Positions 1 to 50,219 of a DNA stretch of 64,000 nt are shown piece after piece. The stretch is from Fimbriosthenelais zetlandica (lineage: Eukaryota): the NCBI GenBank assembly GCA_977030845.1, contig OZ365115.1, positions 29,946,001-30,010,000 of the forward strand, read 5' to 3'. The notes under the pieces are model-generated. The model saw only the letters and a list, made by a program, of their open reading frames with translations, did no database searches and was not told the origin of the DNA. Both the position numbers and the translations under genes were made by a program. How positions within the stretch are numbered: the stretch's first letter is position 1; each line of letters starts with the position of its first letter.

Positions 1-1046
1 ACCATACCGGATGTCATGTACACGAGGAAAAAAACGAACAAAGTCTACGACCTTTGACAATGGTGCTTTGGCAAAATAATTCCCATCGCATTTAGCGCTA
101 ACAACCTGTAAGAGTCATGAAGCACTGTAAAAAGACACTTCACTTCTCTCTCTCCACTCCTTTGCCATACTCGCCTGCAATGGAAAACATCCGGGTGGAA
201 TGAAATAAGCAGACATAAATGATGCCATGCTCTGACTCCCAAGAAAGTAAGATATAGATTTGCACCAGGCAAAGTTGAGGTTAGTGCTTCCTAAAAAGGC
301 AACATTCCGGTTATAGAGTCACAAGATGGGAGTGCACGTTTTAGTGCTTAAAGGTGAATGACTTGACCGATATTTTTTGACATTAAAAAATCACTGCAGG
401 TATTATGATGATAAAGAAGTTATCTATTGCCTCCTTGAAGGTATGTGAACGCTGATAAAAAGATTAAGGTTATCTTCAATCCTGATCTCAATATGACCAA
501 AATGGGGAATTATGTGGAGATAGCAATGCGTACATTTTACTGACTAGCCTATGTTATACTCATTACTTTTGCTGTATATATGTCCTATATTTGTTTAATG
601 TCAAGTGAATTCGGTAATTTGACATTTGAACATTTTCAGAACTTATGTATTTCTCCATGAAACCAGGCATGGACCAGCACCACAGGTCTATGTCTAGTTC
701 AAGGTATTATCTCTAGATGGCAGAGCGGAGCTCATGGTCAGCTACACTCGCTACAATGTTACTCAAAGCTCACAACAGAGGGCCCTAGTTCTGCTCTCAC
801 GCCACCACAAACTCCTGAGTACACCTATCCATCTCTCCTTCTTTTCAAATTGTTCATTTCCTGGCAGTGATGAATTAATACTGGTTCTTAGAGTTAAACC
901 TATTTCCTTGTTCTCAATCTTTACCTGATTAAATATTTCGTGGGTTGCCCTGGTCAAACATCAAAAGCTTGTTTAATAATGCTGTCACTTTATGTTCTTG
1001 CCTGCTTGCATCTAACCATACTCACAAATTTGCTTGTATTTTACAG

Positions 1047-1070
1047 AGCTGGGACCCTCGGCACTTCCAA
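1047..1070 (+). CDS. PPFIA: Putative 24-nt liprin-alpha microexon encoding SWDPRHFQ (phase 0-0)
   Basis: ttttacag|AGCTGGGACCCTCGGCACTTCCAA|gtaagt. TCTAAC branch-point motif at 1011-1016, TGC at 1031-1033, and no AG for about 80 nt before the acceptor. Length is divisible by 3 with no stop, compatible with the phase-0 exon at 24598. No homology support for the peptide itself. Confidence 0.55.
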
Positions 1071-4000
1071 GTAAGTTTGAAATATTAGGATTGCTAGATT
1101 TATGTAGATTAGTGATGCAAAATGTCCCTGGACTTATTTTACTGGGTCTTCATTTTGTTATCGTGGTGTATATCTGTGTGTATACAGTTGGTTTTGGTTT
1201 AGTGTACAAGTTCCTTTTCCTCTATACCTTTCCTTTATAGTTAGTTATAGTTCTTTTGCAAGATCTTTTTTTACTTCATTTGGTTAATATATTTCCTTAT
1301 GTGACATATATGGACCAATTTTGTTGTGTGTGCAAACTCTTAAGTGTTCTATTTAAGCGTTAATATTATATGGATTTCCTTCATATATTTTCTTTTCTAT
1401 CGGAATCAAGTGTTATGACTATTTTACGTGTATCTCTTCCACAAATACTGGACCAGATCCCCAGTTTATGACCCTTGAAATCCGCCTCAAAGGACGAGGT
1501 CTTGAAGCATCCTGGAAAAGCAAAATTCCAATGAGTCCGCGACCAACCACTTTTCCCACCTTCTCAATGAGCTAGGTGGCCAGCCTACTACCCCAGCATA
1601 CAAAACAGCCTTGGAAATTAAAAATACAAAAGCTCCACAGCCAGCAAAGGAAATGAAGAACACAGACTCCCGATGGTCTTTTGCTAGTCGACACTGCTAC
1701 TATTTGGATGATAATGTCTTTATAGCCTAGTCTGAGATACTTTATCACACAATCATATATATATTATATAGAGGTGATAGATGTGGGGAAGAGGAAAGTA
1801 ACATGTTAGTAGCGCTGATAACAAATCTGATACAATATTCATTTCTCTCCTGATGAATTCAGTGATGACGAATGATGAACCACTTCAAATGCTCTTCTGG
1901 GATTTCTTCGTAGCACAGGATGTCGACGATATATCTTTTACGTCTTCCGCTAATTGCTCAGTATTTTAACTGCCTGGCATTTATAAGCATTCTAAATGCA
2001 AGGACGAAGGGCAGATGCTGCTTTTGGCGCCAGTAAATGAATATTGGCTTATAATGACTTGCCAGGAATCTTCATAGGGATCTTTTAGTGCCTCTAATGC
2101 TACAAAATTCTAACTGAAAAACTGTTGGACACTATTTTCTTAGACAATTTCTTTTCAAACGTTTATCCAGGAATTGATCTCAGACATTTTTAGCTATTTG
2201 AAATAGCAGCCACATTGTAAAGTCTGTATCAAGTATGGCTGTCCTGTTTAGGAATATGTATAGCATGATGATTCATTGGCAGCAAACGTCTGACCAATAT
2301 TCATATCTTATCCGCCTGCATGTTCCCATTCCTCTTGGGTCTATTTACATTTAGCCCTGCTTCCAGCCAATATTCACAAACATCTCTCCCCCAATAGTGT
2401 TGTTGACCTGACCCCAGCATTGACCTTGAACTTTGGGCCCTGACCTTGTCTGGAGAAGCTGACCGGTCAGAGTGTAGTATCACCTCTGACCGTGTGATGC
2501 CCATTTCTCGGCCAGTTGCCATGGGAACCGGAAGGAATCGCAGGCGGAAACTGTTGATCATAGATTTGGTGACGCTAGAAGAGATGAGAAAGTGGCTCTA
2601 TTGAACAGGCCTTGTACAGTACTCATAGCAAGCCGTGCATGCAAAAATATATATGTTGAACATGCTGAAGCAAGGGACGAATACTTTAACGCTAATGTCA
2701 TTTAACACTCCAACGATTCTCATGTGAATTTAATTAGGAGAATAGATGTATACATAGCTATTTTTGCTAAGATCCCGTATAGAGCCGCCCTCTGTTGAGT
2801 AAACCTGAAAGTATCTATGATGAATATTCATATGATGAAAGGTACAGATACCGGATTGATCACATCATTAGATCATGGTCATATTTTACTTGTATGTGAA
2901 TTGATTTATGGTCAAATCGACGGTAAAAACACTTTACTTTAGGGATAATATATCAGAATGTGTTTACTATTATGCCTGCGAGGCCTGAAACAGTGCGAGG
3001 CACGTCCACTAAAAGCAGCCTTTGCCCCAAGCCTCGTCACACCCCGGGTGATGAATATTTAGACGTGGAAAGGCCTTCACACGTCTGAACGTTGACACCT
3101 CGTAAGGCCAGCACGTAGCTGTCTCATCTAACAAAGGAATAATGAGACATATAACCTAACTTCAACACTGCAAGCCTGTCCAAATAGCAGGCTTCAACAA
3201 GTGTTTGGATGCAGGTTTTCTCAAATTTGCAGAGTAAATGAATTATGTTCCCAAAAAGTGTCCCTAATAAGCACTTAGGTCGGTTCCTGTTGAACACCAG
3301 TTTTAATGGATAACTTCCATTCCTTATAAAAACGTGTAACGAGAGTATCATTTATCTAGCCCAGACAAGTAAAGTAGCAGATTGAATGCCCTGTCTGGCC
3401 TCCCCACCATTATTTCTCTCTAATTGTTGAGGATAATTAAGGATAATTACTATGGTAGCAGTTTAATTGCCACAAATCATGACCTACCATACGTGACTTG
3501 GTGTCTCCATGCTTAATTTGTGTCGTGGACTCTGCATTAGATTTGACAATGAGACAAAGGCTGTTAACTTAAGTTGTCTAGACTGAATCTGCAAGAGTTA
3601 TATTGCTCATCTGAGCAGCAGCTGTTGCTATTATGAGCAGCAGCTTTTACACACACTTCATATTTTCTGATTTTCATTCCAAAATTCTAATGGATTGCTC
3701 AAAGGATATAATATATTGTCTATACGGCCTACTACCAGTATATGGCACTATTTCATAGATTAGTTTTGTATTCCCGAGGCCTGCTGTAGTTTAGCTTCTG
3801 AAATGCCTTTAGGTCATGGTCGTACGAAGCACATGTTTAATCAGGGGAATAGATGCTGAATATACCAGTGAAAGTCATCACTGGTAACTTGTCATAATCA
3901 TCCCTACTTGGCAACTCCTACTCCAATACACGATCCTGAAATGATTCAGACTTAAATGTTCTACCGTATTGGAGTTGGGCCCTAATCCTTCAAGGCTTGA

Positions 4001-24597: not shown

Positions 24598-24699
24598 GAG
24601 TTTTCACAGCTAACGAAAGAATACAACCAAACGCGGGAAACCCTGCTGGCCAGGGAGGAGGAAATATCCGAATTAAAAGCAGAAAGAAACAACACAAGG
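24598..24699 (+). CDS. PPFIA: Liprin-alpha coding exon, [34 protein letters not shown] (34 aa)
   Basis: Hand translation matches the liprin-alpha motif EFAALTKELN...EEEI(S/A)[10 protein letters not shown]. Boundaries ttttcag| and |gtaagt, 102 nt, phase 0-0. Confidence 0.96.
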
Positions 24700-49731: not shown

Positions 49732-49878
49732 TCTATAGCTCAGAAGGAGGACCAAGAAGAACGTATAGCAACATTGGAGAAACGCTACCTCAACGCCCAA
49801 CGTGAATCTACATCACTTCATGACCTGAACGACAAACTCGAGTCAGAACTGGCCATGAAGGAAGCTCAACTAAAGACG
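49732..49878 (+). CDS. PPFIA: Liprin-alpha coding exon, [49 protein letters not shown] (49 aa)
   Basis: [33 protein letters not shown] is strongly conserved. Acceptor ttacag|, donor ACG|gtagtg (weak), 147 nt. Confidence 0.95.
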
Positions 49879-49888
49879 GTAGTGGCCA

Positions 49889-49907
49889 TCTCTCTCTCCC
49901 TGTCTCC

Positions 49908-49943
<36 letters not shown>

Positions 49944-49990
49944 GTATCTCCCTCTCTCTCCCTGTCCCTCCCACTCCTTCCCTCTCTCCC
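49889..49990. repeat. Imperfect (CT)n microsatellite / polypyrimidine tract just after the exon donor at 49879
   Basis: tctctctctccctgtctccctctctctctctctctctctctttctctctctctc... read directly. Confidence 0.92.
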
Positions 49991-50219
49991 ATTCTATCTC
50001 CTGTTCCTTAACTTTTTCTCTGTTCCTTAATCCCTTACTTTGCCATTTTTCATTAATAAAGTACTCCATACAAGTATATCTTTCTTCAACTATTTCTCTG
50101 GAGTACCTATCCCGAAGATATTGCATTCTAACAAAGTTTTATTCGAGATAATTGTGAGAAGCAAGCTGGTACAAATGCCGAGCAGTAAGTTCTAAACCTT
50201 GGTTTCTACTTCCTTTCAG

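Follow-up and report, generated by a model that had tools for sequence, protein, structure and literature searches.

We analysed a 64,000-nucleotide (nt) stretch of the Fimbriosthenelais zetlandica genome, here called the window (G000:C25:29946001-30010000 of a 447-Mb genome). The window carries nine coding exons of a liprin-alpha gene, from exon 2 onward, on the + strand. Exon 1 (MMCDVMPTISE…STNAPQ; C25:29901644-29901883) lies 44.4 kb ahead of the window, and its 3' end reads CCT CAG|GTAAGA. The first coding intron of liprin-alpha spans 68,714 nt. About 45 kb into it sits a 24-nt sequence that resembles a cassette microexon. Exon 1 ends in phase 0. Hence, a 24-nt insertion keeps the frame. 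We focused on this element, which comparison of sequences suggests is probably a real, lineage-restricted liprin-alpha microexon. The relevant features, in window positions, are as follows.

1047-1070, + strand: candidate 24-nt cassette microexon, phase 0, SWDPRHFQ (AGCTGGGACCCTCGGCACTTCCAA, stop-free)
1031-1046, + strand: acceptor region, with the proximal TGC (-16 to -14), a short pyrimidine run and ttttacAG; the AG ends at 1046
1071-1076, + strand: donor GTAAGT; 8 of 9 positions match CAG|GTAAGT
968-1044, + strand: AG-free zone of 77 nt; the preceding AG is at 966-967
1011-1016, + strand: branch-point-like TCTAAC, matching the CUAAY consensus; CTAAC starts at -35
999-1001, 1003-1005 and 1007-1009, + strand: three clustered TGC (UGC) motifs; two more at 980-982 and 1031-1033
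24598-24699, + strand: liprin-alpha exon 2 (EFSQLTKE…AERNNTR), acceptor tttttcAG; would be joined downstream of the candidate, and helix H2 begins here

A preliminary description of this DNA had placed the exon, acceptor, donor, TCTAAC and TGC motifs. All of these coordinates were exact when the sequence was re-read, and an AG-free zone put at about 80 nt measured 77 nt. The frame-preserving insertion of SWDPRHFQ before EFSQLTKE also held, with phase 0 at both neighbouring exons and a PQ|EF junction. The downstream intron, described as U-rich, is only modestly so (42% T over 100 nt).

The candidate has the attributes of a microexon. It is no longer than 30 nt, a multiple of three, open in the host frame and flanked by functional-looking 3' and 5' splice sites. 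Pyrimidine content at positions -25 to -3 of the acceptor is 0.64. Only one copy of the stretch occurs in the genome. A JGI metagenome scan for the spliced pattern joining the microexon to exon 2 gave 0 matches, and the protein databases contain no entry from the species. Searches for sequencing runs, made for RNA with a 6.7-kb stretch spanning several exons and for any kind of run with one 216-nt exon, returned none.

A location 45 kb into a 68.7-kb intron would also suit a recursive-splicing-type stepping stone, used in removing a giant intron and not persisting in mature mRNA. However, the candidate starts AGCTGG. Joined to the …CAG of exon 1, it regenerates no 5' splice site, and the AG|GTRAGT juxtaposition is absent. 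Hence, the candidate is not a recursive splice site (RS), and we rejected its assignment as an RS-exon. Conservation of the peptide, described below, would also be unexpected of a non-coding element. We regard the stepping stone as very improbable.

A similar mini-exon in a related species

A relative was identified in ENA ERZ25767047 (contig ctg37973_43x_l) by a short-protein search with exon 1. Its liprin-alpha exon 1 is 91% identical in amino acids and 76% in nucleotides. We walked 53 kb of the contig, 43 kb of it past exon 1; exon 2 was not reached within those 43 kb. When the relative's 53 kb were compared with 144 kb of this locus by blastn, only exon 1 and the TMEM183 regions aligned, and the introns gave no match. 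Neutral sequence is thus saturated between the two species. Hence, nucleotide-level conservation of the intron is unusable as a test.

At the peptide level, a single site in the 53 kb resembles the candidate. The 21 nt of this mini-exon, aatAG|TGGGAACCTAGACGTTTTGGC|GTGAGA, encode WEPRRFG. Intron, strand and phase (0) all agree with the candidate, and the distance into the intron is 25.5 kb. Its acceptor is fixed, because in-frame stops lie directly upstream. Comparison of SWDPRHFQ with WEPRRFG shows W, P, R and F to be identical, and the D/E exchange is conservative. The conserved codons differ synonymously between the two mini-exons (Arg CGG/AGA, Phe TTC/TTT). The preliminary description had proposed checking the orthologous introns of relatives. 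That check gave a similar coding mini-exon in one relative, but no nucleotide alignment, and a third species yielded nothing in 35 kb.

We considered whether the candidate is a chance pseudo-exon. On this account an AG…GTAAGT pair is open and a multiple of three by luck, it is never or negligibly spliced, and the relative's peptide is a coincidence. Scored against SWDPRHFQ (BLOSUM62, ungapped), WEPRRFG reaches 31, and the runner-up among the relative's 30 strict pseudo-exons reaches 22. A score of 31 was not attained in any of 1000 Markov-simulated introns (maximum 29, 99th percentile 23; p <0.001 with a strict donor). Real control sequence of ~400 kb gave a maximum of 16 with strict donors. 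When each of 52 pseudo-exons in this intron was compared, with no prior, with each of 41 in the relative's, the SWDPRHFQ/WEPRRFG pair ranked first of 2132. These results argue against coincidence, as do the synonymous differences at the conserved Arg and Phe. The p-value is only 0.02 when any GT counts as a donor, which leaves coincidence more room.

The relative's second match, NIPRHEQK (score 22), was dismissed for its purine-rich acceptor. A second haplotig of the relative is ~98% identical locally, and its mini-exon region is identical. Hence, it has no power as a test of conservation, and the comparison stands at one positive relative. Logan contigs (~90% nucleotide identity) span exon 1 ± 2 kb only. 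The short-protein search with exon 1 gave 831 matches in all, nearly all of them genomic read-throughs (…PQ followed by V… from the GT), and was uninformative on splicing.

Splice signals and the eMIC regulator

The same question can be asked of the candidate's own sequence. The intron contains 15 open AG…GTRAGT pseudo-exons with a length divisible by three, a point in favour of a chance origin, and the candidate has the longest AG-free zone of these. Five TGC motifs lie in the 80 nt before the candidate. The intron background has a mean of 1.19, and five are reached in 0.8% of 80-nt windows. We also defined a composite signature: at least 50 nt free of AG, CTAAY at -55 to -18, TGC at -35 to -5 and a GTRAGT donor within 51 nt. 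One occurrence was found in 288 kb scanned on both strands, while the acceptor-side signatures alone occur 39 times. By a rough count, chance would supply ~0.9 composite occurrences over the 288 kb and ~0.05 when an open exon divisible by three on the intron's sense strand is required. An expectation spanning ~0.05 to 0.9 leaves room for a chance pseudo-exon. Judged by its own sequence alone, the candidate exceeds chance only moderately.

A second open, splice-competent 24-nt pseudo-exon is present in the same intron, 10.8 kb before the window (G000:C25:29935241-29935264). It reads ttattatAG|TCCCAATTAAAGTCACCATATAAG|GTAAGT and would encode SQLKSPYK, and its AG-free zone measures 52 nt. None of the candidates in the ERZ25767047 relative corresponds to it.

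The arrangement of signals recalls exons controlled by the eMIC domain of SRRM-type proteins. In flies and mammals, eMIC-dependent exons combine a strong CUAAY branch site with a long AG exclusion zone and a UGC close to the acceptor (PMC8797185). The candidate acceptor carries all elements of this cis code: the 77-nt AG-free zone, TGC at -16 to -14 and CTAAC at -35. Like eMIC (SRRM3/4, Srrm234) neural microexons, the candidate is also frame-preserving, no longer than 27 nt and located in a synaptic scaffold gene. The donor is a point of difference; eMIC exons in fly tend to have weak donors, whereas that of the candidate is strong.

A regulator of this kind appears to be encoded in the genome. 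SRRM_C (PF15230) matches at C11:15909256-15909330 with 31.8 bits, against a cut-off of 27. The matching open reading frame (ORF) is terminal (…RSRSPYRDSRSPSIRRRRGSPSHLDRRRITR), with closing residues …GSPSHLDRRRITR. This terminal ORF is likely the eMIC-encoding exon of the Srrm234 gene of this genome. The preliminary description had read the candidate as an eMIC-type exon. The cis code at the acceptor and the SRRM_C/eMIC exon fit that reading, but the signature is absent from the ERZ25767047 relative, a difference from the eMIC class.

That absence speaks for 1047-1070 being a real coding exon of another sort, one that is constitutive, broadly alternative or under other factors. The strength of the donor and branch site would suffice for recognition without help. 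In addition, the nemertean Lineus longissimus, described below, has an insert at the same junction in 13 of 14 isoform models, which is compatible with high general inclusion. Conserved microexons of at most 27 nt in synaptic genes are, however, predominantly neural. The complete eMIC cis code in the candidate (PMC8797185) and the presence of the regulator in the genome also speak against this alternative, which we consider distinctly unlikely.

The liprin-alpha PQ|EF junction and its place in the protein

We inspected the PQ|EF junction in ~350 liprin-alpha proteins. In Lineus longissimus (Nemertea, RefSeq), 13 of the 14 isoforms compared read …QSTAPQ-IYPQLK-EFATLTKE…, and isoform X5 is without IYPQLK. 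This liprin-alpha-1-like protein (XP_064635124 and other isoforms) resembles the candidate in having an alternative insert, of 18 nt, at exactly the same junction and in the same phase, and in containing Pro. It differs in length, with six amino acids rather than the eight here. A gene tree groups the window's protein with spiralians but with neither molluscs nor clitellates, and a placement with nemerteans is not demonstrable. The Lineus insert and the candidate may share an origin or may have been gained in parallel. The SQLKSPYK pseudo-exon has QLK in common with IYPQLK, a weak match (score 14).

Isoforms of Mercenaria mercenaria carry or lack VNQN (four amino acids) at the same place, at a PQ|EL junction. 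Given its leading Val, VNQN may derive from a 12-nt alternative donor, not a separate exon. Thus, in annotations of two other spiralians, Lineus and Mercenaria, the exact junction takes small alternative inserts, which also argues against a chance pseudo-exon. Many bivalves (pteriomorphs, including oysters, mussels, scallops and ark clams) have one constitutive extra Q (TPQQEF). An insert at the junction was unseen in gastropod, chiton, cephalopod, brachiopod, Dimorphilus, echinoderm, hemichordate, arthropod, fish and elasmobranch sequences.

Two gene models depart from this pattern. That of Ixodes hexagonus has a 21-residue insert at the junction, starting with V and ending FFQ, and looks like a retained short intron. 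A 458-residue model of Equus caballus has H3-type sequence ahead of a segment resembling exon 2. Both are probable gene-model artefacts.

Neural microexons are known in vertebrate liprins. Mouse Ppfia2 is among the genes with nSR100-regulated microexons (PMC4387716), and Ppfia1/2/4 are among those with neural microexons (PMC7821500). The candidate differs from these in position, the junction being insert-free in the surveyed fish and shark liprins. The preliminary description had placed an extra segment here in human liprin-alpha2. A vertebrate insert at the junction was not supported: none of ~85 fish and elasmobranch representatives of liprin-alpha1-4 has one (human was outside the sample). 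Neural microexons in synaptic scaffolds are thus well known, but this position is not reported for vertebrates.

In Pomacea, Haliotis, Acanthaster and Dimorphilus, some liprin-alpha isoforms use an alternative first coding exon that replaces helix H1 and joins exon 2 directly. Pomacea and Haliotis share a conserved gastropod version, MANGFNVHL…LDY[IV]V…KF[IV]Q. In the first intron of the liprin-alpha gene studied here, …DSASESEQ|GTGAGT was seen ~14 kb before the window.

The N-terminal CC1 region of liprin-alpha comprises H1, H2 and H3 with short loops between them, and H2 and H3 alternate between an H23 dimer and homotetramers (PMC8044993). This dimer-tetramer switch drives oligomerisation of the scaffold, and its regulators are described as unknown (PMC8044993). 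The constructs of PDB 7D2H and 7D2G (liprin-alpha2 H2) start at EFAALTKE, which is homologous to the opening of exon 2; H3 (7D2E) comes next. This alignment puts the candidate junction where H1 meets H2 in the oligomerising CC1 region, at the N-terminal edge of H2. Hence, an insert would lengthen the H1/H2 hinge by eight residues, including Pro and Trp. When Lineus residues 1-215 were modelled as a monomer with AlphaFold2, insert included, the result was one continuous helix (24-144), with a dip in the predicted local distance difference test score (pLDDT 71-79) at the junction. The model is compatible with a loop there and equally with none.

A related case in vertebrates is the SAM1-SAM2 insertion of liprin-alpha2/3/4, the CASK-binding loop. 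This, too, is a short segment, added by alternative splicing, that adjusts a protein-protein interface (PMC8044993). However, it is vertebrate-specific and lies in the C-terminal SAM123 region, whereas the candidate lies in the N-terminal CC1.

Assessment of the candidate and its predicted role

Several findings weigh against the existence of a conserved exon at 1047-1070. The strict GT[AG]AG donor definition, which gives the best p-value, was fixed after the relative's site had been seen. The WEPRRFG acceptor is poor: it has 0 TGC, pyrimidines make up 50%, and the AG-free zone extends over only ~19 nt. A third species (ERZ21781341; exon 1 85% identical) yielded no similar mini-exon over the initial 35 kb of the intron, and exon 2 was not reached. 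IYPQLK of Lineus is not clearly homologous to SWDPRHFQ. Finally, with Lineus and Mercenaria set aside, ~330 annotated liprin-alpha proteins all lack an insert at the junction. The weak acceptor and the negative result in 35 kb of the third species would fit a chance pseudo-exon. Set against the rank of the peptide pair, the simulations and controls, the synonymous codon changes and the two spiralian inserts, we nevertheless judge a chance pseudo-exon unlikely.

We consider it likely that the exon is real. Most of this confidence attaches to a neural exon of the eMIC kind, a small part to an exon regulated otherwise and a very small part to the stepping stone. Our favoured reading, held with moderate confidence, is that the gene has, at 1047-1070, a true cassette microexon of the neural/eMIC kind that evolution has maintained. 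When included, the 24 nt would join exon 1 (…STNAPQ) to exon 2 (EFSQLTKE…), adding SWDPRHFQ with one Trp, one Pro and basic residues. Because the acceptor carries the eMIC cis code and the genome encodes an eMIC domain, we infer that inclusion would occur mainly in neurons, via the eMIC form of Srrm234. The Pro-containing linker would alter the placement of H1 against H2, and the balance between dimeric and tetrameric scaffold may shift as a result.

Self-assembly of liprin-alpha through CC1 nucleates the presynaptic active zone (PMC8044993). A regulated H1/H2 insert would be a simple candidate for controlling the dimer-to-oligomer transition in invertebrates, and would provide one more lineage-restricted case for the view that neural microexon programmes hit the same pathways through different exons across phyla (PMC8797185). 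Gene predictors are likely to miss such an exon in a 69-kb intron.

More tentatively, and with doubt outweighing belief, the H1/H2 hinge of CC1 could be a hot spot of independently gained, small, Pro-containing, neuron-regulated inserts in spiralians. The examples would be eight amino acids here, seven in the ERZ25767047 relative, six in Lineus and four in Mercenaria. If so, invertebrates would possess a splicing switch acting on oligomerisation or phase separation of an active-zone scaffold, with no vertebrate equivalent at the site. This would be a case of parallel microexon evolution.

Two further observations concern the surrounding DNA. Upstream of liprin-alpha, ~47 kb ahead of the window (also L013:4736-5380), is a TMEM183-like gene in head-to-head orientation. 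The head-to-head order is common to this genome, the ERZ25767047 relative and Lineus longissimus, and constitutes conserved microsynteny. Within the window, a long CT-rich simple repeat at 49870-50150 opens the intron right after the exon ending …AMKEAQLK. The repeat reads SLSLSLS… in frame and could mislead ORF-based exon calling.

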